Sequence record: LR588166.1
Direction: 5' to 3' (one strand)
DNA length: 64,000 nucleotides
A model generated the notes under the pieces. The model did not search any database. It was not told the origin of the DNA and saw nothing but the letters and a program-made list of their open reading frames with translations. Made by a program: the position numbers and the translations under genes. Numbering within the stretch: position 1 is the stretch's first letter; every line of letters begins with the position of its first letter. Positions 1 through 53,440 of this stretch are shown one piece after another.

Positions 1-2277
1 GATATATTCGGTAATAATGCTAAAGCCATTAAGCCATCTAGCATAAATGAAAAAATGACTCAAATGAAAATGCTAGATTTTTCGCAAACGTGCGAAATAG
101 ACGTCAGGCCAGAATTTAGATGCTTGGAAGTAAACTATAAGAATGCACCTATGCCAGATTTACATGTTGCATTCTTCGATATCGAGACCGCGTTTGATCA
201 AAAACGCGGTTATGCCGACCCGGCTGATCCTTTTAATCCCATTATATCAATATCTGTATATCTGCAATGGATGCAGCAAATGGTTTGCTTAGCATTAGCA
301 CCAGAGACTATATTGCCAGAAGATGCACAACGCATAGCATCAGAAGTAGGCGAAACAATTATATGTAAAAATGAAAAAGAAATGCTAAGTATGTTTATTG
401 ACTTAGTAGAAGATGCAGATATTTTATCAGGTTGGAACTCAGAACGGTTCGATATTCCTTATACTTTTAACAGAATTGTAAAATTATTAGGTAAGAATGA
501 ACTAAGAAAATTATGCCTTTGGGATCTTATGCCCAAGAAGCGCAATATTGAACAAGAAGGCGGCAGTAGTTTTGTTACATTCGAAACGTTTGGTAGAATA
601 CATTTAGATTATCTCCAATTGTATAAAAAATATAATTACGAAGAACGTCATAGTTACTCGTTAGATTCTATTTCGGAAATCGAACTAGGTGAACGAAAAG
701 TTCCATACAACGGAACATTAGACAAACTTTATAAATATGATTTTAAAAAGTTTTTAGAATATAACATTCAGGATACTCGACTCCTAGATAAGTTAGATAG
801 AAAATTAAAATATATAGATCTAGCTTCCACCATTGCACATAGTAATTGCATTCCTATCCCTACTGTTATGGGTGCAGTAGCTACAACCGAACAAGCAATT
901 ATAATCGAAGCACATAATAACGGCATGGTAGTGCCATCTAGGCAACGTTTTAAAAATAATGATACACTTAAAGCTGCGGGCGGTTGGGTAGCATATCCTA
1001 AAGTAGGACTGCATAGAGATATTGGCTCTAGTGACTTGAATTCACTGTATCCTTCTGTGTTAAGGGCACTAAACATGAGCCCAGAAACTATTATAGGACA
1101 GGTTCGATTAACGCTTACTAACCCTGCAATCGAAGAATGGTGTGCAAAAGGCGGAACAAAACATACATTTGCTGCATGGTGGAACGATAGGTTTACCACT
1201 TTAGAAATGGAATATGTGTTAAACAAAGACAGGGGTACTATATTAACGTTAGATATGGCAGACGGGCGCTCGTTTGAACTGTCAGGTGCCGAAATATACG
1301 AATTAGTATTCAACAGTGGTCAGAATTGGCATATCAGTGCTAACGGAACTATATTCACACAAGACAGAGCAGGTGTAATTCCGTTACTACTTACAAGATG
1401 GTATGCAGAACGTAAAGGGATGCAGAAAATTGCATCAGATTATAATTCTTTAGATAAAGAACACCATAGCGACAAAACTGTATTTTTAGAAGATAAATCA
1501 GTATTAGATGGAATATGCGTAGGCGAAGTTGAATTAGCAGACCATTATAATATTAATGATGTATATGTTGCAGCTACATTAAAAAATCTTGTCGAATCAA
1601 AAAATTGGCAAGAAGTAGCAATATATATGAAAAAGTATGGACTAGAAGTGTCGTCTGACAATTCAATTGTTATGTCAGATTCCCATATGCAAAACGAATA
1701 TTACGAATATTGGGATAAAGCCCAGTTAGTTCGTAAAATTGGATTAAACAGCTTATATGGCGGACTACTTAACGAACATTCTAGATTCTACGATAAAAGA
1801 CTAGGACAGAGTACTACACTTACTGGGCGCTGTATCACTAGACATATGGCTTCTAAGACAAACGAAATGTTCACTGGCATTTACGATCACGAAGGCGATT
1901 GTGTAATTTATGGCGATACAGATAGTGTAGATGGATCAACTATCCTAAATACTTCTTTAGGTAAAATAACTATAGAAGAGTTGTTTAATGTGTCTGACAA
2001 GCATGTAGTTCATGCAGAAAAAGAATTTGCTTCGAACGAAGATGTTATGGTAATGTCATGGGACAATTCTGCAAAACAACCGTATATGGGGCATATAAAC
2101 TATGTGTACCGACATGAAGTAGAAAAAGAGTTATTCGAAATAGAAGACAACAACGGAAATAAAGTTATAGTAACCGAAGATCATTCTATTATGGTTATAC
2201 GTAATGCAGAACTATTAGAAGTTAAACCCACAGATTTAACAGACAGTGATATAATATTATCTATTGTATATGAATAA
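1..2277 (+). CDS. Family B DNA polymerase, N-terminal fragment (5'-truncated by the window) fused to an N-intein
   Basis: Frame is open from base 1. ExoI FFDIET, ExoII GWNSERFD, ExoIII YNIQD, region A DLNSLYPS, region B KIGLNSLYG and region C YGDTD, followed directly by intein sequence. Confidence 0.97.
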   Translation, partial: DIFGNNAKAIKPSSINEKMTQMKMLDFSQTCEIDVRPEFRCLEVNYKNAPMPDLHVAFFDIETAFDQKRGYADPADPFNPIISISVYLQWMQQMVCLALAPETILPEDAQRIASEVGETIICKNEKEMLSMFIDLVEDADILSGWNSERFDIPYTFNRIVKLLGKNELRKLCLWDLMPKKRNIEQEGGSSFVTFETFGRIHLDYLQLYKKYNYEERHSYSLDSISEIELGERKVPYNGTLDKLYKYDFKKFLEYNIQDTRLLDKLDRKLKYIDLASTIAHSNCIPIPTVMGAVATTEQAIIIEAHNNGMVVPSRQRFKNNDTLKAAGGWVAYPKVGLHRDIGSSDLNSLYPSVLRALNMSPETIIGQVRLTLTNPAIEEWCAKGGTKHTFAAWWNDRFTTLEMEYVLNKDRGTILTLDMADGRSFELSGAEIYELVFNSGQNWHISANGTIFTQDRAGVIPLLLTRWYAERKGMQKIASDYNSLDKEHHSDKTVFLEDKSVLDGICVGEVELADHYNINDVYVAATLKNLVESKNWQEVAIYMKKYGLEVSSDNSIVMSDSHMQNEYYEYWDKAQLVRKIGLNSLYGGLLNEHSRFYDKRLGQSTTLTGRCITRHMASKTNEMFTGIYDHEGDCVIYGDTDSVDGSTILNTSLGKITIEELFNVSDKHVVHAEKEFASNEDVMVMSWDNSAKQPYMGHINYVYRHEVEKELFEIEDNNGNKVIVTEDHSIMVIRNAELLEVKPTDLTDSDIILSIVYE
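1924..2274 (+). mobile_element. N-terminal half of a split intein (IntN, 117 aa, Ser1)
   Basis: Starts SVDGST right after YGDTD. Block B TEDH (TxxH) is present. Ends at a stop codon with no HN terminus. Contains no Cys. Confidence 0.93.
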
Positions 2278-3952
2278 AGAATATTATCAGTCATACGCAA
2301 AAGAATTAAAAAAGAATAATAAGAAAGAATACAATCGTATTCTTTCTTTGTATGAGCCTGTATTCGATAAATGGGTTGCATTCAAGTATTATATAGAAGG
2401 AATATCGCCGCCTGTATGTAAAGAATGCAGTAATAGAATAACTGTTTCGGCAAAACAAGCAGAATATCACACAGAATGCAAATATAATAAACACAAGTAT
2501 TCATTCGATAAATTTATAAAATGCATAGATGATGACCAATACATATATTGTGTGTGGAATGGATATATTCCGACATCTAACAATATAACATACAGATGCA
2601 CTAAACACGGCATAATTGTTCAAAAACTTAGTTCTAGACTAAAAGGTCACAAATGCCAAAAATGTTCAGCTGAGCGTAAAGTAAGTCTAGATAACTTTAA
2701 TAACTGGAAAACGCAGTGTTCTAAAATACATAATAATTTTTATGATTATTCTGTATCTACTGATTTTACATTCTTAACAAAAGATGTATCTATTAAATGT
2801 CCAATACATGGAATATTTAAACAAAGAGCAAACGTTCATCAATCGGGTCACGGTTGTAAAAAATGCTCGTTCGAAGCCATCGGTCATAGATTATCATATG
2901 ACACAGATTCTTTTATAGAAAGAAGTAACAATGTTCATAATAATTTTTATGACTATACCAAAACTATATACACTAACATTAGAGATAAAGTTATTATAAC
3001 ATGTCCGATACACGGCGACTTTAATCAGATAGCATATTATCATACTGCCGGACACGGTTGTCAGAAATGCGATTTAGATAAAGTAGCAGAAACTACCTAT
3101 AGATCTAAGGCAGAAATAGAAATATTTGATTTAGTTAAATCTTATTGCTCAGATACAATTCATTCATACAATAAATTTGGATTCGAATTAGACATATATG
3201 TTCCTAGTAAAAATCTTGCAATAGAATATAATGGACTTTATTGGCATTCTTCTAAACATATAGAAACTGATCAAAAGTATAAAACATACCATCTTGATAA
3301 AACCACTACATGCGAACAAAATAATATCCAATTATTACACATTTTTGACAACGAATGGCATACTAAAAAAGATATATGGATCTCGGTAATAAAAAATAAA
3401 CTAGGTTTATCTAATAAAATATATGCAAGAAAAACAGAAATTAAAGAAGTTAATTTCGATGATGCAAAGCAATTTGCTGAAACGAATCATTTGCAGGGTC
3501 ATGCACAATTTCGGTATGCATACGGATTGTATTATTTAGATCAATTAGTTTCTTTATTAACAATTGCAAAACCCAGGTTTAATAAAAATGCAAACTGGGA
3601 AATAGTAAGATTTTGTAACCTAAATAACACAAGTGTAATTGGTGGGTTTTCTAAATTATTAAAGGTAGTTTCTTGTAATTTTACAGGCAAGATAGTATCA
3701 TATGCAAATAGGCGCTGGTCCGCAGGAAACGTTTATGAAAAAAACGGATTTGCCAAAACTTCAATAATAGCTCCTGGATTTTATTATACTGACTTCAAAG
3801 ATACATATAATAGATTATCTTTCTCTAAAGACAAGGCAAAAGTTAAATTAAAAAATTATAATAATTCAGTTAGCGTAGTAGAAAATATTTACGCAAACGG
3901 ATATGGCAGGATTTGGGATTCAGGAAATATTGTTTATACAAAGGATTTATAA
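2270..3952 (+). CDS. Free-standing putative homing endonuclease (Zn-ribbon repeats, PD-(D/E)xK-like nuclease, C-terminal domain)
   Basis: Repeated C-[TP]-[KI]-HG and CxxC motifs, ELDIYVPSKNLAIEYNGLYWHS nuclease-like motif. ATG 2270 overlaps the IntN stop, and its own stop abuts ATG 3953. Confidence 0.8.
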   Translation: MNKEYYQSYAKELKKNNKKEYNRILSLYEPVFDKWVAFKYYIEGISPPVCKECSNRITVSAKQAEYHTECKYNKHKYSFDKFIKCIDDDQYIYCVWNGYIPTSNNITYRCTKHGIIVQKLSSRLKGHKCQKCSAERKVSLDNFNNWKTQCSKIHNNFYDYSVSTDFTFLTKDVSIKCPIHGIFKQRANVHQSGHGCKKCSFEAIGHRLSYDTDSFIERSNNVHNNFYDYTKTIYTNIRDKVIITCPIHGDFNQIAYYHTAGHGCQKCDLDKVAETTYRSKAEIEIFDLVKSYCSDTIHSYNKFGFELDIYVPSKNLAIEYNGLYWHSSKHIETDQKYKTYHLDKTTTCEQNNIQLLHIFDNEWHTKKDIWISVIKNKLGLSNKIYARKTEIKEVNFDDAKQFAETNHLQGHAQFRYAYGLYYLDQLVSLLTIAKPRFNKNANWEIVRFCNLNNTSVIGGFSKLLKVVSCNFTGKIVSYANRRWSAGNVYEKNGFAKTSIIAPGFYYTDFKDTYNRLSFSKDKAKVKLKNYNNSVSVVENIYANGYGRIWDSGNIVYTKDL

Positions 3953-4207
3953 ATGCATAATCTAACAAAACACCTTTTAGGTGTATTTTCTGCAAAAACA
4001 GAAGACGAAGAATATAACAGTGCAAAAAGAGCGTTAGAAGAATTAAACAAAAATATAAAAGAAAGAGATCCTAATAAATTTAATGTGTCTTTAGGAAAGG
4101 TATCTAAAGTAACTAATTTAGGAAAAAAGAAACAATATGTATACGATATAGGGATGAAAAATCCCGATAATCCGTATTTCTTTGGAAATAATATATTAGT
4201 TCACAAT
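3953..4207 (+). mobile_element. C-terminal half of the split intein (IntC, ends His-Asn, +1 Ser at 4208)
   Basis: Block F VYDIG and block G FFGNNILVHN. Ligation restores YGDTD-SCYF. Confidence 0.93.
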
Positions 4208-5092
4208 TCTTGCTATTTTACTGCATGGCCTGCAGTAAAAGACCTTGTAGAATCTGGTGAAATGGAATGGGATAAAGATACTGTCATTAAATTATACGAC
4301 AACGTTTCGTCACAAGTAAGTGATACATTTCCAGAATTTTTAAAACAAACATTTAATGTTCCATATAAAAACTCAGAAGGTGTTATTAAGTCAGGTAGGG
4401 AAATTGTAGCTACTTCTGGTCTTTTTATTAAAAAGAAACGTTATGCTGCTATGATGTATGATAAAGAAGGTACTAGATACGACGACGAAAACAGCCCAGG
4501 AAAAGTAAAAGCAATGGGTCTGGACCTACGTCGGTCAGATACGCCTAAATTTGTCCAAACATTCCTTATGGAAATTCTAGTTATGGTGCTAACACATAAA
4601 ACAGAAGATGAAGTAATAGAATATATTAGAGAATTTAAAAAAGAATTTAATAAAATGAAACCGTGGGAAAAGGGAATGCCAAAAGGCGTCAACGGTATCA
4701 GTACATATGAAGATAAATTAGAAGAACACATGAATAAAAAGTTAGCAGGAAGAGAGTCTAGAATCACTGTCCCAGGTCACGTGTCTGCTGCGATGAATTG
4801 GAATAAACTAAAGCTTATCAATAAAGACCTACATACTCCTAAAATCTCAGATGGTCAAAAATGTGTTGTTTGTTATTTAAAAGAAACAGCAGACAATCAT
4901 TTTACTAGTATAGCATATCCTGTAGATGAATTGCACTTACCAGAATGGTTTACGTCTTTGCCATTTGATGAAGATTTAATGAGAGAAAAAGTAGTAGATA
5001 ACAAAGTTAAGAACCTTTTAGGTATTCTAAAATGGGATTTTAGTAAAACAGAAGAAGCTGCTGCACACTTCGATTCGCTGTTTGGTTGGTAA
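3953..5092 (+). CDS. C-intein fused to the C-terminal fragment of the family B DNA polymerase
   Basis: VYDI...ILVHN|SCYF junction, then KKRYA and KAMGLDLRRSDTPK palm/thumb motifs. Confidence 0.96.
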   Translation: MHNLTKHLLGVFSAKTEDEEYNSAKRALEELNKNIKERDPNKFNVSLGKVSKVTNLGKKKQYVYDIGMKNPDNPYFFGNNILVHNSCYFTAWPAVKDLVESGEMEWDKDTVIKLYDNVSSQVSDTFPEFLKQTFNVPYKNSEGVIKSGREIVATSGLFIKKKRYAAMMYDKEGTRYDDENSPGKVKAMGLDLRRSDTPKFVQTFLMEILVMVLTHKTEDEVIEYIREFKKEFNKMKPWEKGMPKGVNGISTYEDKLEEHMNKKLAGRESRITVPGHVSAAMNWNKLKLINKDLHTPKISDGQKCVVCYLKETADNHFTSIAYPVDELHLPEWFTSLPFDEDLMREKVVDNKVKNLLGILKWDFSKTEEAAAHFDSLFGW

Positions 5093-5114
5093 TCAAAAAC
5101 TATACTTTGTACAC

Positions 5115-5143
5115 TTGCATTATGAAAATATTTAATGTATAAT
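5115..5143 (+). promoter_or_regulatory. Sigma70-type promoter
   Basis: TTGCAT-17 nt-TATAAT upstream of the ORF at 5173. Confidence 0.6.
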
Positions 5144-5172
5144 TCACACACATCTTAGGAGAATAATAAGTA

Positions 5173-5919
5173 ATGATTGTAGACAATTTAAAGGACGTAG
5201 TTCGTAACACTCACGGTTTGGGTTTTATAGATACTGTTAAAATTATTGGTTCTGTAAATGAAACTAAATTAGAAGCTATGTCAACCAATAAAACTGTAGT
5301 TATGTACGGTTCTTTAAAAAAATCCATTCCGGGGTTAGACGATACTGTAGGTTTAAGTAGAATGTCTGTACTGAGCGGTATGTTAAATTTCCCACCATAT
5401 TCGGGAGATGATGCTGAAGTTTCTATTAAGAAACAAGAACGTAACGGTGAAGAAATTCCTGCAGAAATTGTATTTTCTTCTTCGACGGGTCATAAATCGT
5501 CGTACCGGTTTATGGCACGAGATACAGTAGACGAAGTGCTAAAAGTTCCGCCGTTTAGAGGAGTTGTGTGGGATATAGTTATTCAACCTACTAAACAAGC
5601 GATGAAGGATCTTCAATATTTCAGTGCTGTATTGGGTTCTTATGAATCTAACTTTTTAGTTAAAGTAACAGACGGTGTTTTAGAATTCCACATAGGTACC
5701 GGTGCTACTAGCGACCGTACTGTTGTACCATTTGCAAAAGATGTAAAGAGCACATTACGCAATAACTGGTCCTGGCCATTACCAGAAGTGTTAGCAATTC
5801 TAAAAAACGCAGATAGTGGCAAATGTACTATGTCTATTTCTAGCCAGGGTGCATTAATGATTGAACTCGATACTGGGTTAATAGAAGTTCAATATATTCT
5901 TCCTGCAAAAAGTGCATAA
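5173..5919 (+). CDS. Probable DNA polymerase sliding clamp (gp45-like)
   Basis: 248 aa, directly downstream of the polymerase, beta-rich repeating pattern, ends YILPA. Inferred from size and context. Confidence 0.55.
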   Translation: MIVDNLKDVVRNTHGLGFIDTVKIIGSVNETKLEAMSTNKTVVMYGSLKKSIPGLDDTVGLSRMSVLSGMLNFPPYSGDDAEVSIKKQERNGEEIPAEIVFSSSTGHKSSYRFMARDTVDEVLKVPPFRGVVWDIVIQPTKQAMKDLQYFSAVLGSYESNFLVKVTDGVLEFHIGTGATSDRTVVPFAKDVKSTLRNNWSWPLPEVLAILKNADSGKCTMSISSQGALMIELDTGLIEVQYILPAKSA

Positions 5920-5922
5920 ATA

Positions 5923-6183
5923 ATGATCTTACCTGCTCGTAAATTAGTTAAATTGCAATACTATATTGTACAGGAATCTTACAATTCTATAGGTAGACCA
6001 ATAACTACAGTTACTCTTGTATACAGAAAATATATATTTTTTACAAAGAAAGAAAAAATTATATTCGAGCGTATTAAGAAAACAGATAATTTGTATTATA
6101 AACAAGAATCCGAAAAAGAGTTGTGTGAACAACTAAGTGTATGGGCAAAAAGAACACTAAAAATATATGATATAGGGCAATAA
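5923..6183 (+). CDS. Hypothetical protein
   Basis: Colinear ORF ending in a hairpin terminator. Confidence 0.55.
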   Translation: MILPARKLVKLQYYIVQESYNSIGRPITTVTLVYRKYIFFTKKEKIIFERIKKTDNLYYKQESEKELCEQLSVWAKRTLKIYDIGQ

Positions 6184-6198
6184 TTGCCCTATATTTTT
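6171..6198 (+). terminator. Intrinsic terminator
   Basis: TATAGGGCAA-taa-TTGCCCTATA followed by a T-run. Confidence 0.65.
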
Positions 6199-6255
6199 CA
6201 TTTATAAATGAATTAACCTAAATACATATGCACTAAAGAATAATTAAGGAATATA

Positions 6256-7878
6256 ATGAAAAATTTATCAAACAGTCAAAAAGATTATGCGATCTATTTG
6301 CCTGCAATTAGTGGGTTTTACACAAAACAATTAGACAGTTCTATTAACGATCCGTCTACAAGAAAAATACCTAGCTTTCCTAATGGATATAATACTCTTA
6401 ATTTTTTAGATCCATCTAGCGATACATTCTTTTACGGGTATGGATTATATTCTGCAGGCCATGCAGAGCTGTCTTTATCTAGAACTGATGCAAAAGAATG
6501 GATGATCCAAGCCAGGGACAAAACACAAACAACAGTTATTGCAGATTCGGGTGGTTTTCAGGTAGCTACTGGTGTAATTAAATTAAACTGGGATGATTTT
6601 AAAGGAGCTAGCGGAGATAAAATAAGAAATGAAATTTTAAAATGGTGTGAACATACCGCCGACTGGTCAATGACACTAGATGTTCCTGCGTTTGCTGCTA
6701 CTCCTCCGTACAGTTCAAAAACCGGTCTTAATAAATTCGAAGATACATTAGATTATTCTCTTCATAATTTACATTATTACATGAAGAACAGAACTCCTGG
6801 CGCAACTAAATTCCTTAGTGTATTATCGGGATCAGATGTAGATACATCTAAAATTTGGTACGACAACGTAAAAGCATTTAGTGACCCCGCTAAAGTAGTA
6901 GAAATGGGATATCCAGCTAGTCATACACTCGAAGGATATGCATTTGCTGGTATAAACATGAGAAATATGTATTGTGCTCTTTCTCGATTCTTAGATCTAA
7001 TAGATGACAATATTATTTCAGATAAAAACTGGATACACTTTCTCGGACTAGGCAGGACTGATTGGGCTTGTTTCTTAACATCTATTCAGCGAAATATAAG
7101 AAAACATTATAATCCCAATATTAACATAAGTTTTGACGCAGCTTCTCCGTTTGTTTCTGTAGCATACGGTCTTGCATATAACTATAATTATTTTAATCCC
7201 AAACGGTGGGGATATAATATGGATTCTGCCCCGGACAGTAGAGAGTTTAGTGATAAAGATATTCCTATGCCGTTTATGAGTCCTATTATGGAAAAATTAT
7301 CATTAAAAGATATATGTCCATATCACAACGGTTATGGTATAATAAATGGTGTTAAAAATGCAAACTTTACAAAAGAAGATGTAGAAACTGCTCTCAAAGA
7401 AGGAAAAGATGCAGAATACGTGCCACCGAGTGCAAATAAAAATGGTAAAGTAGGTAAAACCAGTTGGGATTCACTTAGTTACTTATTAATAATGAATCAC
7501 AATGTTTACAATCATATAGCTGCAATCCAAGAATCTAATAGATTAGTTGATATAGAACGGTTGCGAGTTAAAGTAGATTACCGAGATTGGACTAGAGATA
7601 AAAAGAAAGGTACTATAGAAGTAAGTAATCACGTCCCTAGTTCGATTTTATACTTTGATCATTTTGTAGAAGTATTGCTAGATCCGAGTACTCCTAATAA
7701 GCGACAATTACTAGAAGATTATAGACCTATGCTAGACAGCATTAGTTTCGGTAATTATAACTCAAACTCATTTAACAGTCTTTTTGATGTAGATGCTACT
7801 GCAATTGAAGATGAAAATAAGTTTGCAGACATAAACGACGAAAAACTAACCGAATTAGAACAAGGATTAGACAATTAA
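6256..7878 (+). CDS. TGT-fold guanine transglycosylase (DpdA-like)
   Basis: TGT signature DSGGFQ, then MTLDVP, IHFLGLG and SFDAASP. Clustered with QueD-like and QueE genes. Confidence 0.8.
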   Translation: MKNLSNSQKDYAIYLPAISGFYTKQLDSSINDPSTRKIPSFPNGYNTLNFLDPSSDTFFYGYGLYSAGHAELSLSRTDAKEWMIQARDKTQTTVIADSGGFQVATGVIKLNWDDFKGASGDKIRNEILKWCEHTADWSMTLDVPAFAATPPYSSKTGLNKFEDTLDYSLHNLHYYMKNRTPGATKFLSVLSGSDVDTSKIWYDNVKAFSDPAKVVEMGYPASHTLEGYAFAGINMRNMYCALSRFLDLIDDNIISDKNWIHFLGLGRTDWACFLTSIQRNIRKHYNPNINISFDAASPFVSVAYGLAYNYNYFNPKRWGYNMDSAPDSREFSDKDIPMPFMSPIMEKLSLKDICPYHNGYGIINGVKNANFTKEDVETALKEGKDAEYVPPSANKNGKVGKTSWDSLSYLLIMNHNVYNHIAAIQESNRLVDIERLRVKVDYRDWTRDKKKGTIEVSNHVPSSILYFDHFVEVLLDPSTPNKRQLLEDYRPMLDSISFGNYNSNSFNSLFDVDATAIEDENKFADINDEKLTELEQGLDN

Positions 7879-8939
7879 TGAAAGTTATAATAATCCCAAT
7901 CGAATCAATAGAAACTCGGTATACGTCAGAATGGAATACGTTTCTTAAACCGCAACTAGAAAAGTATATAAACGAATCCGGTCTCGATGCAGAAATAGTT
8001 CAAATTGATGTAGATTATGTTGACGAAGGCACCTCTGCGGGCGCCTTCCTTAACTTTGCAAATACAAACATATTCAAAAGCAATCAATTCATTAAGTTAG
8101 CAAGTATAATAGAAACTTTAAACGATAACGATGTTGTTCTCTATACAGACGCATGGAATCCCACAGTAGTTCAACTAAATTACATGCGATCGTTAATGAA
8201 TAAAAAATTTAAAATAATGGGGTTGTGGCACGCCGGTTCGTATGATCCGCATGATTTTTTAGGAAGGCACTTTGATAAAAATTGGTCATATGAATTTGAA
8301 AGATCATTATATAATATATATGATGTAAATTTCTATGCAACTAATTTTAGTAAAGATCTCATGATAGATAACCTTTTTGGTAAAACAGCTAACGTAAACA
8401 GACACGATATAGTAGGTTGGCCAATGGAATATTTAGTTGACCAACTTACACCTTCTCCTAACAAGACAGATACTATATTATTTCCTCATCGAATTTCTCC
8501 GGAAAAACAACCAAATATATTTAAAAAATTAAGATCATTACTTCCTAACTACGAGTTTGTTTTTGCACAAGAAACTAAATTATCAAAGGCAGAATACCAT
8601 ACACTTCTTAAACGTTCTAAAATTGTCTTTTCGGCTTCGTTGCAGGAAACATTGGGTATAGGTTTCTACGAAGGTGCATTAGTCGGTGCAATTCCATTAT
8701 TGCCTGACCGATTGTCTTATAAAGAAATGACAGAAAATGTAAAAAACAGAAATTTGTATGTATATCCAAATGAATGGACTATTTCGGAAAATCTGGCAGA
8801 CCTAAAAAATTTAGTTACCCTAATAGATTATACTATGCGTAATTATAATTTTATAGTAGAAGAAATGAAACTTAATTTACTGCCCGAATTAAACAAATAT
8901 TATAACGGAACAGAGTTGTATAAAAGAATTTTAAAATAA
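7878..8939 (+). CDS. GT-B fold glycosyltransferase
   Basis: FPHRISPEKQP and FSASLQETLGIGFYEGALVGAIP resemble the GT4-like C-terminal domain. TAATG coupling to the transglycosylase gene. Confidence 0.82.
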   Translation: MKVIIIPIESIETRYTSEWNTFLKPQLEKYINESGLDAEIVQIDVDYVDEGTSAGAFLNFANTNIFKSNQFIKLASIIETLNDNDVVLYTDAWNPTVVQLNYMRSLMNKKFKIMGLWHAGSYDPHDFLGRHFDKNWSYEFERSLYNIYDVNFYATNFSKDLMIDNLFGKTANVNRHDIVGWPMEYLVDQLTPSPNKTDTILFPHRISPEKQPNIFKKLRSLLPNYEFVFAQETKLSKAEYHTLLKRSKIVFSASLQETLGIGFYEGALVGAIPLLPDRLSYKEMTENVKNRNLYVYPNEWTISENLADLKNLVTLIDYTMRNYNFIVEEMKLNLLPELNKYYNGTELYKRILK

Positions 8940-8964
8940 TTTCCATTTAATATTCTGCATACAA

Positions 8965-8993
8965 TTTACATTTTAATACGAAAACATTATAAT
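8965..8993 (+). promoter_or_regulatory. Sigma70-type promoter
   Basis: TTTACA-17 nt-TATAAT. Confidence 0.6.
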
Positions 8994-9023
8994 ATTACAA
9001 AATTAAAAATAAGGATTATTTTT

Positions 9024-9401
9024 ATGGGAATTAAACGATGGATCGAAGTTCCTTTTCAAAAAGAAGGAATTCACATGTACCCTGGTGCAGATAACAACCC
9101 TGCACTAGCTACAAATGATTGGAAAGATGTATCTTTTTTAGGATATCCTCATTTTCATTATTTTTATTTTACTGTTAAAATTGAAGTTTTTCATAATGAA
9201 CGAGATATCGAATTTATTCAATTTAGACGGTTCTTAGAAAGACTGTATAGTGAATCTCTGCTAAAACTAGATGGTAAATCTTGTGAAACTATGGCAGAAG
9301 AATTATATGAACAAATTAACATTGTATATCCTAACAGGGACGTTGTGATTACAGTGGCAGAAGACAATATTAATAAAGCTGTTTTAGAATTTTTCAAATA
9401 A
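9024..9401 (+). CDS. QueD-like (T-fold, PTPS-like) protein
   Basis: 125 aa. His cluster GIH...YPHFH, then SCETMAEEL and TVAEDN, matching the PTPS/QueD layout. Cluster context agrees. Confidence 0.6.
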   Translation: MGIKRWIEVPFQKEGIHMYPGADNNPALATNDWKDVSFLGYPHFHYFYFTVKIEVFHNERDIEFIQFRRFLERLYSESLLKLDGKSCETMAEELYEQINIVYPNRDVVITVAEDNINKAVLEFFK

Positions 9402-9415
9402 GCAAGGATGCTATT

Positions 9416-9676
9416 ATGTATAATAAACAACTGTCAGGAATATATACTACTACAACGATAAACTCTATGCCAGCTAGCTACTCCGGATTAACGGATCTAG
9501 GCATGTATGATACAGAACTTTCGGTATTGAGGAAAAAGATAGAACGGATAGAAAAAATGTTGTGCATGTTAGAAGTAGATAAATTACTTTCAGAAAAATA
9601 TCCTGCATTAAAATCTGCATATGACGAATACGAAGTCATATTATCTGTCATAAACGGTACGGAGAAAAAAGAGTAA
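9416..9676 (+). CDS. Hypothetical protein
   Basis: Colinear ORF with RBS, abutting the next gene. Confidence 0.6.
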   Translation: MYNKQLSGIYTTTTINSMPASYSGLTDLGMYDTELSVLRKKIERIEKMLCMLEVDKLLSEKYPALKSAYDEYEVILSVINGTEKKE

Positions 9677-10195
9677 ATGGCAATGCGTGTCATTATTACT
9701 GGTTGTAACGGTTATGTTGGTAAAACAGTAAGCAAATACTACTATACATTAGGATATAATGTCGTGGGATTTGATTTAATTAATTCAAAAAATAGTTACA
9801 TAACTAATTTTTATCAAACTAGCTATGCATCTAGTATTGCAGAAGATATAATACTCGAATCTGATGCAGACACGCTTATTCATTGTGCTGTAGAAAAAAG
9901 CAATACATTACAACAACATTTCTACCACAATAGTATTCAATTTATAAACTTATTATCAGTATTAAAAAATACTTCTATAAAAGAAATAATAGTATTTAGA
10001 AATAAAAGTGCAGAAAATAATGATGCCCTTTTAAAACTCTCTAATAACACTAATAAAGACTATTTAGAAGAATTTTCTAAATCGACAGGAATTAGTTCAA
10101 AAATATATAATTTGTTAGATAAGAATAATGAACAACACATTATAGAATTAGTACAACCGTATTTAGAATTAAGTAAACACTTTTATATATTTTAA
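9677..10195 (+). CDS. Truncated NAD-dependent epimerase/dehydratase-like (SDR) protein
   Basis: N-terminal VIITGCNGYVG Rossmann motif, VVGFD, LIHCA. Only 172 aa and no clear YxxxK. Confidence 0.65.
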   Translation: MAMRVIITGCNGYVGKTVSKYYYTLGYNVVGFDLINSKNSYITNFYQTSYASSIAEDIILESDADTLIHCAVEKSNTLQQHFYHNSIQFINLLSVLKNTSIKEIIVFRNKSAENNDALLKLSNNTNKDYLEEFSKSTGISSKIYNLLDKNNEQHIIELVQPYLELSKHFYIF

Positions 10196-10206
10196 GGAGA
10201 CATTAT

Positions 10207-10641
10207 ATGTACGATAAAAACTTTGTATCAATGGATCAAATGCCAGTTATTGTCAGTGACTTAGTTAGTGATATAGACGAAGCAGGAATTTCTCCTAAAG
10301 TTATTATTGCTATTAGCAAAGGTGGACTAATTCCTGCCACTATGATTAGCTATTATTATGATTGCCCTATCGTAACATACGATCCGGTAGAAGATTGTTT
10401 TAGTACAAATAATGATATAAGTTCTGAATGCATTATCGTAGATGATGTTATCGATACAGGCAATACTGTAAATTCTGTTATTTCTTTGCTAGAAGACGAA
10501 TTCTTTTTTACGAAAGAAGACATTAGTAAAATTAGAGTAGCATCAATATTTGCAACAAGAAATAATACAATTGTAGATTTTTATCATGACGAAATAAGTT
10601 ACCATGATTCGGTAAGTTTTGAATTTAAACAATTTATTTAA
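10207..10641 (+). CDS. Type I phosphoribosyltransferase (purine PRT-like)
   Basis: IIAISKGGLIPA and the PRPP loop CIIVDDVIDTGNT. Confidence 0.85.
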   Translation: MYDKNFVSMDQMPVIVSDLVSDIDEAGISPKVIIAISKGGLIPATMISYYYDCPIVTYDPVEDCFSTNNDISSECIIVDDVIDTGNTVNSVISLLEDEFFFTKEDISKIRVASIFATRNNTIVDFYHDEISYHDSVSFEFKQFI

Positions 10642-10654
10642 TATAAAGTTATTC

Positions 10655-10683
10655 TTTACTTTTAGTATGATTGCGTTTATAAT
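10655..10683 (+). promoter_or_regulatory. Sigma70-type promoter
   Basis: TTTACT-17 nt-TATAAT upstream of queE. Confidence 0.55.
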
Positions 10684-10711
10684 GTATATTATAAAATAAA
10701 GCGGATTATGT

Positions 10712-11584
10712 ATGAAACACAGATATACTGAAAAGTTTTTCTCAGTCCAGGGAGAAAGCCTACATACCGGAAAACTATGCACTTGGCTTAGATTTTTCGG
10801 ATGTTCGTTGCAATGTAGGGGCTTTGGACAAAAAGAACCCGGAAATCCCGAAACATGGGTAGAACAACGACCGGATTTAATAGATGTAACAAACATTACA
10901 GATTATAAACAATTACCGACTCCTAAGTATGGATGTGATTCAGACTATTCTGTATTTGCTAAATTTAAACATCTTGCAACAGAAGTCGATCCTGTTGTAG
11001 TTGCAAATGAAATAAAACAATTAATTCCTAGTAAAACATTTGGTAAAAAAATAGGTCATGTATTTACGGGCGGAGAACCGTTAGTAAACCAAGAATCTAT
11101 AGTAGATATAGTAAATTATTGGATAGATACTAATGATTATCCTGCATGGATAGGAATAGAAACAAATACAACTAGACCGTTAGAAAAATGCTTAATCGAT
11201 TTAGTTAACAGATGTAAATCGATTGGTGTGCAATTTTATTTTTCTATGTCACCCAAACTACTTCATGTAGCAGGTGAACAACCCAAACGAGCTATCCATA
11301 TAAATTTAATGAAGGAATATATAGATATTGCACCGGATAGCTATCTAAAATTTGTAGTAAATGAAGATCAGCGATCGTGGGATCAAGCAAAAAGTATAGT
11401 AGACACATTAAATGCTGACGGGTATTTACCAGATGTGTGGGTTATGCCAGTCGGAGGCATTTATTCCCAACAAACAGACCCAGTAATTGGAAGACTTGCA
11501 GATAAAGCTATCTTCGAATACGAATGGAATGTTAGTTTACGTGTTCACGTATTAACCTGGGGTGACGATCAACTAGGTAGGTAA
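10712..11584 (+). CDS. queE: 7-carboxy-7-deazaguanine synthase (radical SAM)
   Basis: EKFFSVQGE, LRFFGCSLQC...GCDS, FTGGEP, IETN, SPK, KFVV, VMPVG, SLRVHVLTWG. Confidence 0.88.
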   Translation: MKHRYTEKFFSVQGESLHTGKLCTWLRFFGCSLQCRGFGQKEPGNPETWVEQRPDLIDVTNITDYKQLPTPKYGCDSDYSVFAKFKHLATEVDPVVVANEIKQLIPSKTFGKKIGHVFTGGEPLVNQESIVDIVNYWIDTNDYPAWIGIETNTTRPLEKCLIDLVNRCKSIGVQFYFSMSPKLLHVAGEQPKRAIHINLMKEYIDIAPDSYLKFVVNEDQRSWDQAKSIVDTLNADGYLPDVWVMPVGGIYSQQTDPVIGRLADKAIFEYEWNVSLRVHVLTWGDDQLGR

Positions 11585-50829: not shown

Positions 50830-50906
50830 CCCTCGGTAGCTCAGTTGGTTAGAGCGCGCGACTCATAATCGCTAGGTCACTGGTTCGAATCCAGTTCGAG
50901 GGACCA
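50830..50906 (+). tRNA. tRNA with CAT anticodon, Ile2 (lysidine)-like, copy 1
   Basis: Cloverleaf with CCA. Anticodon arm GCGA-CTCATAA-TCGC resembles bacterial tRNA-Ile2. Elongator Met is not excluded. Confidence 0.9.
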
Positions 50907-50928
50907 ATTTTAAGATGTTGTGCTTTTA

Positions 50929-51013
50929 GCCCGAGTGGTGAAATTGGTAGACACAGGAGACTTAAAATCTCCCGCTTCGCAGCGTACCGGTTCGAGTCCG
51001 GTCTCGGGTACCA
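50929..51013 (+). tRNA. tRNA-Leu(TAA), copy 1
   Basis: GGAGA-CTTAAAA-TCTCC, long variable arm, CCA. Confidence 0.95.
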
Positions 51014-51063
51014 AACAAAAGATATAAATACTTAACAAGATAGGAAACTATTCTAAAATTAAA

Positions 51064-51139
51064 TGGCTAGTAGCTCAGTTGGTAGAGCAAATGACTGTTA
51101 ATCATTGGGTCGTAGGTTCGAGTCCTACCTAGCCAGCCA
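51064..51139 (+). tRNA. tRNA-Asn(GTT)
   Basis: AATGA-CTGTTAA-TCATT, G73, CCA. Confidence 0.95.
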
Positions 51140-51165
51140 ATTACACTTTGTTGTATATTCAATAT

Positions 51166-51241
<76 letters not shown>

Positions 51242-51310
51242 ATTTTAAATAACAGTTGTATCTAAAGAGATACAATAGTCTAAATAAAATATTCATATAA
51301 TGTTTCAAAC

Positions 51311-51387
51311 GGGACTTTAGCTCAGTTGGTTAGAGCGCGCGACTCATAATCGCTAGGTCACTGGTTCGAATCCAGTAAGTCCCACCA
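51311..51387 (+). tRNA. tRNA with CAT anticodon, Ile2 (lysidine)-like, copy 2
   Basis: Identical to copy 1 except the acceptor stem (GGGACTT/AAGTCCC), CCA. Confidence 0.9.
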
Positions 51388-51437
51388 ATTTTTATATACA
51401 AATCAAACTATACTTAAACTATATAATGAATGAATAT

Positions 51438-51522
51438 GCCCGGTTGGTGAAATCGGTAGACACAGGAGACTTAAAATCTCCCGACGAAAGTCGTGCCAGT
51501 TCGAGTCTGGCACCGGGCACCA
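51438..51522 (+). tRNA. tRNA-Leu(TAA), copy 2
   Basis: Same anticodon arm as copy 1, CCA. Confidence 0.95.
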
Positions 51523-52388
51523 AACCCCTAAAAAAGGAACATATTATAGTATGTTCCTTTTTTATTATGATATTTTTATTATGAATGAAATAATGCATAT
51601 ATCTGCCAACACATACGTAATAGAATATCGCGTATTAAACAAGTTAGTAGTTACTATAAAAGATAATAGATCTTTCACATTATGGATACATTTTGATATC
51701 GGTGCATTTTCTATAGCATGGAAATACAATGCAATATAGAATTAAAAAATGAAATACATTATTAATTTACAATACTCAACAGAAGTAATATACATGCCTT
51801 GTTTCAACATATTATCGCTATGCGATAATAGATCTGTTACTATCCTTTCTATTACTATGATATTTAAGATAAGATATTATTTGCATCCGATGTACCGTTA
51901 TATTCTATAATACATAATATTTTTATTGTAACAAATACCAGAAGTGCTTAGATAATATATAGCAATTCTGTTTATTATCGATATTATGGTATACTTAGTA
52001 TTCTTATTAACCTTATTACATAGAATAAAGAATGGAAAAAATTTTAACTATTTCGCATAAAACATTGATATGTGAACTGTCGTTATTAAAATGGTCGAAA
52101 TCCATAGTTTGTGTTTATTCTGGCGAAATAGTATGGTATGCTCGGCTAGATAAGAACTGTTATGTTGTACGGATAAGATGATGATAATGAACTGTATTTT
52201 TTCCTATTCGTATTATTTAGAACGCATCGTATGTCATGCAAAAATCTACAAAGGGTTTGTAGTCAGTAAAAATACTTTTTGTGAGAAATCCGTAATAGCT
52301 TTATACTTAATAAATAGTGGTAGTTATTTTCATAAATGTTACGTCGATCATTACTTAATTGTATAGATATATATTTTAATAAAAATAG

Positions 52389-52417
52389 TTGACCGAACAA
52401 ACAAAACAGTATATAAT
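52389..52417 (+). promoter_or_regulatory. Sigma70-type promoter for tRNA-Arg
   Basis: TTGACC-17 nt-TATAAT. Confidence 0.7.
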
Positions 52418-52468
52418 GTTACGCATACAAAGCATTATTACAAAGCTATCATTAGTTGCACAAGATAT

Positions 52469-52545
52469 GCGCTCGTAGCTCAGCTGGATAGAGCATCCGC
52501 CTTCTAAGCGGATGGTCGGGGGTTCGAATCCCTCCGGGCGCGCCA
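52469..52545 (+). tRNA. tRNA-Arg(TCT)
   Basis: TCCGC-CTTCTAA-GCGGA, CCA. Confidence 0.95.
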
Positions 52546-53084
52546 ATTTTAAAGAGTGTTGTGTTATGCAAACAATAAGATTTGACATAAGACTTCTTCG
52601 TTATAGTATGAAACAAGGTTTCTGTTGTATAGGTAAAGATATATTTGAAGTGTGCAGAAAAACTCGGATCAGTCCAGGTCAGCTAAACTTACGAAAAAAT
52701 TATATAGGACGAGTATTAATCGGAATTGATTCGAACTATAATCTGCACAATACCTGTTTAGTAGGCTGGACTCGGTATAAAAATATTATAGTATAAAAAT
52801 TTATATTAATAATATGAATAGATGCAAAGAACATCTACAATACAGAACAATCAAAAAGCATACATCGACTTGTAGGAAATGCAAAGAGTTATCGTTACAA
52901 ATAAAATTATTTTGGCTTCAACAACAAGCATTCAGTATTAGAACCGATACTAGCGGAATATACATATTCGATATTAAATATAATTCTATTTACGTATACT
53001 CTGTAGCTTGGTATAATACAGAATTATACGGTAAAGGGAAAATAATTTTAGAATAAACATGTATATATAAGAGTACCTCAAATA

Positions 53085-53417: not shown

Positions 53418-53440
53418 ATAATATAACAATATAGTTTTAT

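Follow-up and report, generated by a model that had tools for sequence, protein, structure and literature searches.

Positions 6256-11584 of the 64,000-nucleotide stretch analysed here (the window) are, on balance, best explained as the central part of a module that modifies DNA with 7-deazaguanine after replication, with a glycosyltransferase (GT) adding a sugar. The gene set suggests that the DNA carries a guanine substitute with a sugar attached, of a kind not described so far, and a glycosylated 7-deazaguanine is plausible. It is very likely that a deazaguanine enters the DNA through the transglycosylase of this cluster, and likely that the GT belongs to the deazaguanine pathway; glycosylation of the final DNA base is proposed more tentatively, slightly on the doubtful side.

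Sequence comparison matched the window to MIJ3 (100% identity) and to PA5oct (99%), and the source is Pseudomonas phage vB_PaeM_MIJ3, a PA5oct-like jumbo phage. A 2025 preprint, in which the chemistry was not identified, described PA5oct DNA as restriction-resistant and G-modified: it resists G-site enzymes and is cut by nucleases that sense modified G (PMC12191111). By implication, five of the ten enzymes listed in the preprint still cut this DNA (PMC12191111), and the modification may be partial or sequence-dependent.

Gene content of the cluster

Seven plus-strand ORFs occupy positions 6256-11584, at the coordinates given by a previous reading of the letters (the sequence-only reading), which left the 86-aa ORF at 9416-9676 unmentioned. 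The cluster directly follows the polymerase and the clamp, as that reading had it: upstream lie a clamp-like gene and, split into three pieces, a family-B polymerase (55-5092), and the module sits in the replication region of the phage. The features are the following:

5173..5919, + strand: sliding-clamp-like protein, conserved next to and upstream of the transglycosylase in 40/40 fully flanked loci
6169..6195, + strand: hairpin resembling a terminator, with a 12-bp stem and a T-rich tail, shortly before the transglycosylase gene
6256..7878, + strand: divergent DpdA-type guanine transglycosylase, 540 aa, assigned by fold and catalytic motifs
7878..8939, + strand: GT4-type glycosyltransferase, GT-B, retaining, 353 aa; its start overlaps the transglycosylase stop
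8965..8993, + strand: promoter-like site TTTACA-17-TATAAT between the GT and DpdL genes, a consensus match only
9024..9401, + strand: DpdL by homology to phiST CGPG_00067, 125 aa, with a QueD-like T-fold and a predicted role in CDG decarboxylation
9416..9676, + strand: small conserved protein, 86 aa, usually directly upstream of the epimerase in relatives
9677..10195, + strand: truncated GalE-like SDR, 172 aa, with a Rossmann N-terminal match only
10207..10641, + strand: type I purine phosphoribosyltransferase (PRTase), XGPRT-like, 144 aa, PRPP loop VDDVIDTGNT
10655..10683, + strand: promoter-like site TTTACT-17-TATAAT upstream of queE, a consensus match only
10712..11584, + strand: QueE, radical-SAM 7-carboxy-7-deazaguanine synthase, 290 aa (PHROG 2076, E 7e-49)

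With the hairpin, a new transcription unit probably begins. The total number of promoter-like sites was not above the shuffled expectation.

The 540-aa protein was read from the letters as TGT/DpdA-like, and both its superfamily membership and its catalytic residues were borne out by fold and motifs. It gave no match in Pfam, PHROG, NCBIfam or PDB sequences, so that its TGT nature is argued from the modelled fold and the catalytic motifs and not from sequence models. The AF2 model (pLDDT 87.9) has a TIM-barrel TGT fold; the best 11 Foldseek matches in the PDB are all TGT, and VIA scored TGT at Z 18.9 vs 11.6 for the next, unrelated TIM barrels. Its structural neighbours in BFVD are phage DpdA-type proteins, including nt-1 DpdA2 and phiST DpdA3, and a protein-atlas search led to TGT and DpdA clusters. 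Furthermore, hhalign against an alignment of the ACP17, X1 and BCSR5 DpdA proteins gave Prob 93% and E 4e-7 with all catalytic motifs aligned, and ACP17 gp123 itself matches NCBIfam tgt_general. Alignment columns and the motif table show invariant D97 (in DSGGFQ, residues 97-102), D142 (MTLDVP), G192 and D294 (SFDAAS); motif inspection found no CxCxxC zinc motif. By these model-based criteria the protein is a divergent DpdA-type enzyme.

The proposed coupling of this gene to a GT-B glycosyltransferase through a TAATG junction was also confirmed, the stop TAA covering 7876-7878 and the ATG 7878-7880. The GT matches PF00534 weakly, and its structure model is confidently GT-B/GT4 (pLDDT 92). Across the alignment columns the EX7E motif (E257...E265) is invariant, and conservation is very strong in the N-terminal acceptor domain. 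The top Foldseek matches are BshA, MshA, PglA and GlgM, and no DNA glucosyltransferase is among the best structural matches listed; tetrahydrobiopterin alpha-glucosyltransferase (5ze7/5zes) ranks 45 and 50. A close viral relative of the GT has QTMAN-like clusters among its structural neighbours, and the GT itself has no match to the Pfam QTMAN_N domain. The ACP17 ortholog, gp124, shares 39% identity (E 4e-62).

Two gene assignments have to be revised. The gene at 9024-9401, taken at first as QueD-like, is DpdL: tblastn and blastp matched it to phiST CGPG_00067, and the DpdL signature LxxxH(R/F)HxF (PMC10516641) appears here as L39-GYP-H43-F-H45-Y-F47, with conservation across 74 family sequences. 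The true QueD is encoded about 54 kb upstream. Likewise, the presumed SDR epimerase gene is what remains of a truncated GalE: it retains GxxGxxG, has KLSNN where the catalytic YxxxK would align, and lacks the C-terminal, substrate-binding domain. Judged by its sequence, the protein is probably an inactive remnant, while the epimerases of relatives have intact GalE motifs. The purine PRTase and QueE were correctly recognised. The former scores 43 bits with PF00156, above the cut-off, with xanthine PRTase as best NCBIfam match and Sulfolobus GpT-2 as best PDB match; for the latter, the best NCBIfam matches are QueE models, below their cut-offs, and GenBank records annotate queE.

Conservation of the gene arrangement

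Linkage was counted in 40 metagenomic loci flanked by 9 kb or more on each side. The GT, which comes after the transglycosylase, and DpdL are each present in 39 of them, QueE in 33, FolE in 26, GalE in 25, the PRTase in 18 and the 86-aa protein in 13, the last probably undercounted because it is short. A catalytically intact transglycosylase is found next to the clamp in every locus. The arrangement is far beyond chance and recurs in 39 of these 40 related loci; this synteny lies largely within one phage clade and could reflect inheritance instead of selection. In the single locus without a GT (L062), DpdL is missing too. More broadly, the set of guanine-swapping enzyme, sugar transferase and 7-deazaguanine genes is repeated in thousands of uncultured phages.

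Elsewhere, the GT gene adjoins or overlaps the DpdA gene in three further phage lineages (ACP17, X1 and BCSR5), and it adjoins DpdL in Phosso. In addition, GT-DpdL-transglycosylase-QueD cassettes occur in alphaproteobacteria (Magnetospirillum, Rhodospirillaceae), in defence islands that place them beside an Mrr-type nuclease or Wadjet-like genes and have integrases close by, and the bacterial GT-DpdL-transglycosylase cassettes come without other phage genes. The link of the GT to the pathway is conserved in phage lineages and bacterial islands, and is much stronger than the sequence-only reading had it. The GT4 enzyme is a genuine partner of the transglycosylase and not a chance neighbour. No GT homolog was detected in the cultured DpdL phages Ahp1, RHph_I1_18, Bakedbeans and D479; as several such phages have no detectable homolog and phiST has no GT, the enzyme is dispensable for dDG.

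Proposed pathway and alternative explanations

FolE and QueC had been noted as lying outside the window. A search of the rest of the genome for folE, queC and queF, suggested at that time, located folE together with the true queD about 54 kb upstream of the cluster (Pfam 1e-59 for FolE, 2e-30 for QueD); neither QueC nor QueF is among the 538 annotated features of the genome, in which TilS is the sole PP-loop protein. FolE and QueD, with QueE, would convert GTP to CDG, and the pathway would halt before preQ0 because there is no QueC. Hence preQ0 and preQ1 are unexpected, and dPreQ0, dPreQ1 and dG+, listed previously as candidate products, are not anticipated; we infer 7-deazaguanine (dDG) or a derivative of CDG as the expected base. 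DpdL would most likely remove the carboxyl of CDG to give 7-deazaguanine, a step proposed for phiST, whose DNA has dDG as 100% of G, made with DpdL and DpdA3 and without a GT (Cui et al. 2023, PMC10516641). The decarboxylase role of DpdL is a prediction, and expression of ACP17 dpdA and dpdL in E. coli gave no dDG (PMC10516641).

The transglycosylase would then swap guanine in phage DNA for 7-deazaguanine by the TGT mechanism, in which D294 would be the nucleophile and base recognition and catalysis would involve D97 and D142. The co-translated GT4 enzyme would add a hexose or N-acetylhexosamine from a UDP-sugar, presumably on that same base, giving a sugar-bearing deazaguanine; glycosylation at the free-base stage is a less likely alternative. 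In relatives an intact GalE-like 4-epimerase may make the sugar donor, the gene having decayed in this phage. The expelled guanine would probably return through the XGPRT-like PRTase to GMP and GTP, the pathway precursor. Several points count against this reading: the best structural matches of the GT (BshA, MshA) use small molecules, the epimerase of this phage is probably dead, and a decarboxylated 7-deazaguanine has no C7 hydroxyl or amine, so that the sugar would have to sit on C7/C8 as a C-glycoside, on N2 or on O6. To our knowledge, none of these is known in DNA.

A simpler product, which we consider rather unlikely although it is the most serious competitor, would be plain dDG or dCDG as in phiST, with the GT4 enzyme and the ancestral GalE glycosylating another DNA base, a protein, a lipid or a small molecule, and travelling with the module for gene-order reasons. 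It agrees with dDG formation in phiST without any GT, with the DpdL phages without a GT homolog, with the small-molecule acceptors of the closest solved structures and with the lack of an obvious acceptor atom on 7-deazaguanine. However, the GT gene adjoins or overlaps that of DpdA or DpdL in five arrangements (the window, ACP17, X1, BCSR5 and Phosso), the pairing persists in bacterial cassettes, the sole exception has lost both GT and DpdL, and the acceptor domain is very strongly conserved. A pre-replicative route is improbable. There, the PRTase would couple CDG or 7-deazaguanine to PRPP, DpdL would decarboxylate the base or nucleotide, and the product, once reduced and phosphorylated, would be incorporated by the polymerase as a 7-deaza-dGTP analogue, leaving another role for the TGT-like protein. 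The tubercidin pathway shares this logic: it lacks QueC, builds on CDG and uses a decarboxylase and a PF00156 PRTase. The PRTase gene of the phage is directly upstream of queE, and the phage has ribonucleotide reductase and nucleotide-metabolism genes of its own. Nevertheless, the intact transglycosylase beside the clamp in every locus speaks against it, as does the PRTase, found in only 18 of the 40 loci and absent from ACP17, X1 and the bacterial cassettes; Cui et al. saw no phage with deazaguanine DNA that lacked a DpdA, and they argued for post-replicative insertion, which the partial restriction sensitivity also suits.

The chance that tRNA is the target is smaller still. The enzyme has the fold of a tRNA-guanine transglycosylase, the window encodes tRNA-Asn(GTT) and the tRNA-modifying TilS, and the QTMAN-like neighbours would fit a deazaguanine at position 34 of GUN-anticodon tRNAs (host or phage tRNA-Asn) that the GT then glycosylates as QTMAN/QTGAL do. 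Yet it is PA5oct DNA itself that resists G-site enzymes and is attacked by modified-G-sensing nucleases; the closest relatives of the enzyme in viruses are of the DpdA type, acting on DNA; the gene keeps to PolB and the clamp, with the tRNA cluster 43 kb away; the bacterial cassettes lie beside restriction nuclease or Wadjet-like genes; and the GT lacks a QTMAN_N match. The TGT zinc subdomain, part of the tRNA-contacting region, has no motif in the transglycosylase. Least probable of all is a pterin glycoside, with no nucleic acid involved. Cyanobacteria make biopterin glucoside, the enzyme classes agree in outline (FolE, a PTPS-like T-fold enzyme, an SDR and a GT4), and a pterin GT is among the structural matches, but far below generic GT4 enzymes; moreover, the SDR is GalE-like and not sepiapterin-reductase-like, and the conserved QueE and transglycosylase have no place in such a synthesis.

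Comparison with known systems

The phiST system shares FolE, QueD, QueE, DpdL and the lack of QueC (PMC10516641), a divergent TGT-like enzyme missed by Pfam and a position beside the DNA polymerase, the window DpdL being a direct homolog of CGPG_00067. It differs in its transglycosylase (259 aa vs 540 aa here, with marginal similarity: hhalign Prob 32%, Foldseek E 8e-3) and in having no GT4, PRTase or GalE-like gene. Also comparable are Acidovorax phage ACP17, Xanthomonas phage X1 and Burkholderia phage BCSR5, with the DpdA, GT4, DpdL and QueE core plus FolE and QueD, an orthologous GT, abutting or overlapping GT-DpdA genes and aligned catalytic motifs. Their DpdA proteins, however, have 424-446 aa and are detectable as TGT (NCBIfam tgt_general, 4.6e-7), unlike the window protein; their clusters lack the PRTase and epimerase, and no product has been reported for them.

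With bacterial Tgt and the DpdA of dpd clusters, the window enzyme shares the TIM barrel and the succession of DSGGFQ, substrate-binding Asp and nucleophile Asp at similar distances, and the same base-exchange chemistry would be expected of it. Its bacterial homolog cassettes lie in defence islands, as dpd does. In contrast, it lacks the CxCxxC...H zinc site, carries about 165 extra residues, matches neither PF01702 nor PF23859, and has a glycosyltransferase beside it where no DpdB-like partner is seen.

As regards the sugar, the alpha-GT and beta-GT of T-even phages are also GT-B enzymes in phages that make a non-canonical base, with the expected role of hiding DNA from nucleases; their acceptor is the 5-hmC hydroxyl of a pyrimidine, whereas here it would be a purine analogue without a hydroxymethyl handle, and no T4 GT is among the listed top structural matches of the window GT. 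Eukaryotic QTMAN (GT4-like) and QTGAL place a sugar on a 7-deazaguanine derivative in nucleic acid, namely tRNA, but their acceptor, the queuosine cyclopentenediol, is beyond this phage's pathway because QueC, QueF, QueA and QueG are lacking, and the QTMAN_N domain is not matched. Finally, HuiG of huimycin/dapiramicin biosynthesis comes from the secondary metabolism of actinomycetes, where its acceptor is an O-methylated, free preQ0 base and neither a transglycosylase nor DNA takes part. It is nonetheless alike, by enzyme class and description, in being a GT4 enzyme with a UDP-sugar donor and a 7-deazaguanine-derived base, and its transfer of GlcNAc onto the 2-amino group of the free 7-deazapurine shows that such chemistry exists.

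Organization and genomic setting of the cluster

The region at 6256-11584 is 100% identical to positions 130256-135584 of Pseudomonas phage vB_PaeM_MIJ3 (LR588166.1). Nucleotide comparison also recovered the cluster, at 98.7-99.1% identity, from ten further records, all of PA5oct-like jumbo phages of the genus Wroclawvirus: PA5oct (two records), Paride, Callisto, PAC2, Deifobo, Ettore, Cassandra, 30-2 and 30-3. The GC content of the region is ~30-33%, and its features are listed below.

Features of the cluster and of the DNA upstream of it
55-5092: family-B DNA polymerase (PolB), in three pieces, upstream of the cluster
5173-5919: clamp-like gene, upstream of the transglycosylase
6169-6195: strong terminator-like hairpin between the polymerase/clamp block and the transglycosylase gene
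6256-7878, + strand: TGT-like transglycosylase, 540 aa
7878-8939, + strand: glycosyltransferase (GT) of the GT4 type, 353 aa
9024-9401, + strand: DpdL homolog, 125 aa
9416-9676, + strand: conserved ORF of no known family, 86 aa
9677-10195, + strand: truncated epimerase-like SDR, 172 aa
10207-10641, + strand: phosphoribosyltransferase (PRTase), 144 aa
10712-11584, + strand: QueE, 290 aa
Two larger intergenic gaps of the cluster: TATAAT-type promoter-like sites

The sequence-only reading had described this gene set as lying directly after the polymerase and the clamp, with a TAATG junction between the transglycosylase and the GT. The description is accurate: seven plus-strand ORFs lie downstream of PolB and the clamp-like gene, and at the junction one base is shared by the stop codon (TAA, 7876-7878) and the next start codon (ATG, 7878-7880). 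The whole cluster is also spanned by contigs from RNA libraries, to which we give little weight, as such contigs are not proof of transcription. The 86-aa ORF, absent from that reading, showed no match to any known family; it is kept in distant huge phages, usually immediately 5' of the epimerase.

The upstream genes presented some particularities of their own. The clamp-like protein has no Pfam match and its only PHROG match is of unknown function, the records of PAC2 and Phosso annotate it as PCNA or sliding clamp, and its gene lies next to the transglycosylase, on the upstream side, in all of the 40 loci compared below. The first polymerase ORF (55-2277) encodes the exonuclease and the N-terminal part of the polymerase followed by a C-terminal intein N-terminal splicing domain; the second (2264-3952, in another frame) a DUF723/Hef-like homing endonuclease; and the third (3953-5092) the intein C-terminal splicing domain with the C-terminal part of the polymerase. 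In relatives, PolB is a single uninterrupted ORF of 977-991 aa. A functional polymerase may be obtained from the three ORFs through a split intein, frameshifting or separate subunits.

Deazaguanine pathway genes and the transglycosylase

The ORF at 9024-9401 had been read as QueD-like. By tblastn, its 125-aa product matched exactly on CGPG_00067 of Cellulophaga phage phiST (E 5e-8), and pairwise blastp against that protein gave 33% identity (E 6e-16). CGPG_00067 was named DpdL by Cui et al. as a candidate decarboxylase of 7-carboxy-7-deazaguanine (CDG), proposed to explain the phiST DNA with 100% 2'-deoxy-7-deazaguanosine (dDG), and carries the signature LxxxHRHxF instead of the QueD motif CxxxHGH (PMC10516641). 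In the window protein the signature reads L39-GYP-H43-F44-H45-Y-F47, with the R replaced by F, and conservation of its L, its final F and both H reaches 90% or more over 74 homologs. This homology, together with the signature, identifies the ORF as DpdL and not QueD, and its product as a predicted CDG decarboxylase. The real QueD of the phage keeps CRHLHGH (Pfam PTPS, 2e-30) and adjoins FolE (Pfam, 1e-59) outside the window, ~54 kb upstream of the cluster. DpdL is found alongside FolE, QueD, QueE and a DpdA-type enzyme, without an annotated QueC, as is expected of a DpdL.

FolE and QueC had been noted as missing from the window, which is correct. Beyond it the outcome was divided, since FolE is present upstream but no QueC or QueF is found among the 538 annotated features of the whole sister genome PAC2. 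The sole PP-loop ATPase (60632-61243) was considered as a QueC and rejected, because it is the tRNA-Ile lysidine synthetase TilS (N-domain) according to the curated equivalog TIGR02432 (131 bits vs a cut-off of 93.6). Given the lack of QueC and QueF in the PAC2 annotation, the pathway ends at CDG, probably continuing to 7-deazaguanine, and preQ0, preQ1 and G+, previously listed among the possible products, are not expected. The QueE assignment was borne out over the full length of the protein (PHROG 2076 QueE-like, E 7e-49, residues 1-286); in NCBIfam the best matches were to four models for QueE, none of which reached its equivalog cut-off. As a separate observation, the phage carries three tRNA genes with a CAT anticodon (50830-53517) in addition to TilS, and at least one of them may be a tRNA-Ile2 converted by the phage TilS.

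The two genes between the 86-aa ORF and QueE had been read as an SDR epimerase and a purine PRTase. For the first, the family is right, as the protein is GalE-like, but the window copy is predicted to be a dead GalE remnant. Relatives encode an epimerase of 312-324 aa (245 aa in one marine variant) with all the GalE hallmarks (TGGxGFxG, SSS, YxxxK, RYFN and DGTCxRDYxHV). The window protein ends at 172 residues, reads KLSNN at the positions aligned to YxxxK, and is missing the catalytic Ser/YxxxK and the C-terminal substrate domain; an active epimerase was therefore rejected. The intact epimerase of the relatives implies that the ancestral sugar donor was the 4-epimer of a UDP-hexose or UDP-HexNAc. 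The PRTase agreed with the earlier assignment: it matches PF00156 (43.3 bits vs a cut-off of 26.3), the PRPP-binding loop VDDVIDTGNT can be read directly, its best NCBIfam match is xanthine PRTase and its best PDB match is GpT-2. By these similarities it is a type I enzyme, nearest to xanthine-guanine PRTases. Its simplest role would be guanine salvage; by analogy with tubercidin biosynthesis, a TubE-like action on CDG is conceivable.

The 540-aa transglycosylase showed no match in Pfam, PHROGs, NCBIfam or the PDB, the latter by sequence or by profile, and none of 36 family members matched Pfam PF01702 (TGT) or PF23859 (DpdA), even at E<=10. The family is large and its sequences are well conserved: there are more than 1,600 close relatives at ~50% identity, many of them on contigs of 200-390 kb, and an exhaustive profile search gave 1,019 clusters (50% identity). 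An AlphaFold model built on a 36-sequence alignment (pLDDT 87.9, pTM 0.87) presented a TGT-type (beta/alpha)8 barrel. The top 11 Foldseek matches in the PDB were all tRNA-guanine transglycosylases or their QTRT2 partner, and a second structural aligner (VIA) gave Z 18.9 over 312 residues vs 11.6 for the best unrelated TIM barrel. Among viral structures (Foldseek, BFVD), the nearest named ones were a "tRNA guanine transglycosylase" of Achromobacter phage Motura (3e-11), a protein of Vibrio phage nt-1 (7e-8), a mycobacteriophage DpdA-type protein (1.6e-3) and phiST M4SLA5, that is, DpdA3 (CGPG_00065; 8e-3). The nt-1 family was given the name DpdA2 by Hutinet et al. The catalytic motifs follow the order and spacing of E. 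coli Tgt and are invariant in the 36 members.

Catalytic motifs of the transglycosylase and their counterparts in E. coli Tgt
ADSGGFQ, D97: D89, DSGG(F/Y)Q; invariant in 36 members and aligned to DSGGLQ of ACP17 DpdA
MTLDVP, D142: D143 (IFDE), the substrate-binding Asp; invariant
VLSGS, G192: IIQGS
GYAFAG: GYAVGG
FLGLG: LMGVG
SFDAAS, D294: nucleophile D264 (MFDC); invariant

The CxCxxC...H zinc site is missing, and only C354 and H415/H420 are conserved there. By hhalign, the family matched an alignment of DpdA from the phages ACP17, X1 and BCSR5 over 190 columns that include every catalytic motif (Prob 93%, E 4e-7), with both D142 and D294 aligned. This probability needed the three-sequence alignment as target, and single sequences (E. 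coli Tgt, phiST DpdA3, X1 DpdA) gave weak local matches only. The DpdA of ACP17 (gp123) itself matches NCBIfam tgt_general. The protein was not assigned to DpdA3, to which its similarity is marginal: the hhalign match to CGPG_00065 was confined to the HFLGxG region (Prob 32%, E 5e-4), and the ACP17/X1 type stands nearer to it. The TGT/DpdA-like gene of the sequence-only reading was thus corroborated by the fold and by the invariant D97, D142 and D294, with no curated sequence model matching it. We conclude that the 540-aa protein is a putative DpdA-type transglycosylase, predicted to be competent for catalysis. Its divergence keeps it out of DpdA1 to DpdA4, and it represents a new DpdA subfamily.

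The glycosyltransferase and its conserved linkage

The proposed GT-B glycosyltransferase also found support. The model (pLDDT 92) has the two-Rossmann GT-B fold, and a structure search in the PDB returned 107 matches at E<=1e-3 (best E 9e-11), led by the retaining GT4 members BshA, MshA, PglA and GlgM, to which the GT is closest. The EX7E motif (E257-TLGIGFY-E265) and the phosphate-binding R205 and K210 of the C-terminal domain are invariant in 33 sequences; conservation is very strong also in the N-terminal acceptor domain, which has many aromatic residues. Pfam Glycos_transf_1 scored below its gathering threshold on the window GT (19.9 bits vs 26.4); several relatives carry PF00534. Membership in the QTMAN family was rejected, as QTMAN_N (PF12038) was not among the Pfam matches and, for a viral protein closely related to the GT, QTMAN-like clusters ranked only midway among the structural neighbours.

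Eighty IMG/VR loci with relatives of the transglycosylase (36-53% identity) were scanned with profiles built from the window proteins, and linkage was counted over the 40 loci flanked by 9 kb or more on each side.

Genes accompanying the transglycosylase in the 40 fully flanked loci
Clamp: 40/40
GT: 39/40
DpdL: 39/40
PolB: 37/40
QueE: 33/40
FolE: 26/40
GalE-like epimerase: 25/40
PRTase: 18/40

The genes are all on the same strand, with variable order and spacing. The sole locus without GT is also without DpdL (L062, 9962-12715, on the 310-kb contig IMGVR_UViG_3300020277_000001). QueE directly follows the transglycosylase there, neither GT nor DpdL lies within 10 kb, and nothing informative was seen in the surroundings; the two genes appear to have been lost, or to be located elsewhere, as a pair.

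In each of four cultured phages from other lineages the GT ortholog touches deazaguanine genes. The order in ACP17 is DpdA (gp123), GT (gp124, with a 4-nt overlap), DpdL (gp125) and QueE (gp126), and in Xanthomonas phage X1 it is GT, DpdA, DpdL and QueE. In Burkholderia phage BCSR5 the GT precedes a 446-aa DpdA-like ORF that is closely followed by QueE, whereas DpdL lies ~2.7 kb upstream of the GT, and in Sinorhizobium phage Phosso DpdL is followed by an overlapping GT, adjoining FolE and QueE.

Furthermore, a scan of cellular genomes revealed a compact cassette of GT, DpdL, transglycosylase and QueD, free of phage replication genes, in Magnetospirillum sulfuroxidans J10, Magnetospirillum sp. 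64-120 and two Rhodospirillaceae MAGs. The J10 cassette (3330-9048 of the locus fetched from NZ_JAGTUF010000011.1) is directly 3' of an Mrr-type (Mrr_cat) restriction nuclease, another (L106) adjoins Wadjet-like DUF3375/MksE genes, and an integrase is near both. The bacterial cassette looks like a restriction-modification-like island on the same chemistry, as its position beside nucleases suggests. The linkage across viral loci, cultured phages and cellular cassettes argues that the GT acts in the same DNA-level pathway and is not a chance neighbour. This conserved GT partner of a DpdA-type enzyme is new.

Several of these loci presented additional genes. The cassettes (J10, L106, L109 and L112) run GT, DpdL, transglycosylase, a 116-aa ORF, QueD and a conserved protein of 261-265 aa with DxD-like acidic motifs, for which neither a Pfam match nor a phage counterpart was found. 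In one huge-phage subclade (L007, L009 and ten further loci), a conserved protein of 277-279 aa, with no Pfam match and no homolog in the window, lies immediately 3' of the transglycosylase, in the place that the GT has in the window. Between GT and FolE, the marine contig L015 (99 kb) carries a HIT-family protein along with two 2OG-Fe(II) oxygenases, and its epimerase is only 245 aa, so that the final base may differ between lineages. This version is abundant in the sea, and its GT protein occurs in 197 indexed blocks of the contig collection. In Azospirillum picis IMMIB TAR-3 (L105, 4335-11123), a protein distantly related to the transglycosylase (29% identity) is encoded beside a family-A DNA polymerase and a reverse transcriptase, flanked by a WYL regulator and integrases; this locus is without GT or DpdL and is possibly a different conflict system.

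Proposed pathway and comparison with known systems

In the proposed route with the best support, GTP would be converted to CDG by FolE, QueD and QueE, and CDG to 7-deazaguanine by DpdL; the DpdA-type enzyme would exchange guanine in DNA for 7-deazaguanine, and the GT4 enzyme would then add a sugar. The cluster very probably serves deazaguanine modification of DNA, and the GT probably belongs to that pathway. Whether the base in DNA is glycosylated is close to an even question, leaning towards no. Somewhat more tentative is the complete proposal, in which PA5oct-like phages, a very large uncultured marine/huge-phage clade and a few alphaproteobacterial defence islands would replace guanine with glycosylated 7-deazaguanine through an unrecognised DpdA subfamily paired with a dedicated GT4 enzyme. 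The earlier interpretation, a glycosylated 7-deazaguanine in phage DNA, is therefore partly supported and sharpened. A pterin-glycoside product was rejected, since QueE and the transglycosylase are conserved.

The phages PA5oct, MIJ3, Paride, Callisto and PAC2 are cultured and have been considered for therapy. PA5oct is restricted by END nucleases, one of which targets only phages with modified G, and the 2025 preprint that reports this noted QueE and a PTPS in the phage genome, naming neither the transglycosylase nor the chemistry of the modification (PMC12191111). These phages are already known for a G modification sensed by host END nucleases, and the enzymes named here offer a direct route to its chemistry. 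The cluster is not discussed in the genome papers on PA5oct and MIJ3, and our literature searches returned no report of this transglycosylase family or of glycosylated deazaguanine in DNA; if true, a sugar-bearing purine analogue would be seen here for the first time in any genome. Such a sugar would bear on restriction evasion, on nanopore and other sequencing, and on the supply of DNA-modifying enzymes. Moreover, ~1,000 clusters at 50% identity go unseen by Pfam, PHROG and NCBIfam, so deazaguanine DNA is probably far commoner in large environmental phages than annotated.

The acceptor atom is the weak point of the model, and 7-deazaguanine has no C7 hydroxyl or amine. The sugar could be attached as a C-glycoside on an electron-rich pyrrole carbon, possibly at C7, after or with DpdL-mediated decarboxylation. 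It could also be attached at N2, or DpdL could, in the presence of the GT, catalyse a different reaction from plain decarboxylation. Since D97 and D142 are retained, the N1/N2 edge of the base is probably gripped as by TGT. A base already glycosylated at N2 would then be unlikely to be inserted, and the sugar would more likely be added once the base is in the DNA.

Known systems bear on these options. When dpdA and dpdL of ACP17 were expressed in E. coli, no dDG was found, and other enzymes may be needed (Cui et al., PMC10516641). The same authors report dDG as a peak of 267 Da whose base ion lies at m/z 151. The GT encoded between dpdA and dpdL of ACP17 is an obvious candidate for the missing enzyme and may account for the absence of product. 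PhiST and several other DpdL phages are without the GT, and the sugar would therefore be an optional elaboration, not needed for dDG. For attachment at N2 there is a precedent in HuiG, also of the GT4 type, which N2-glycosylates a free 7-deazapurine.
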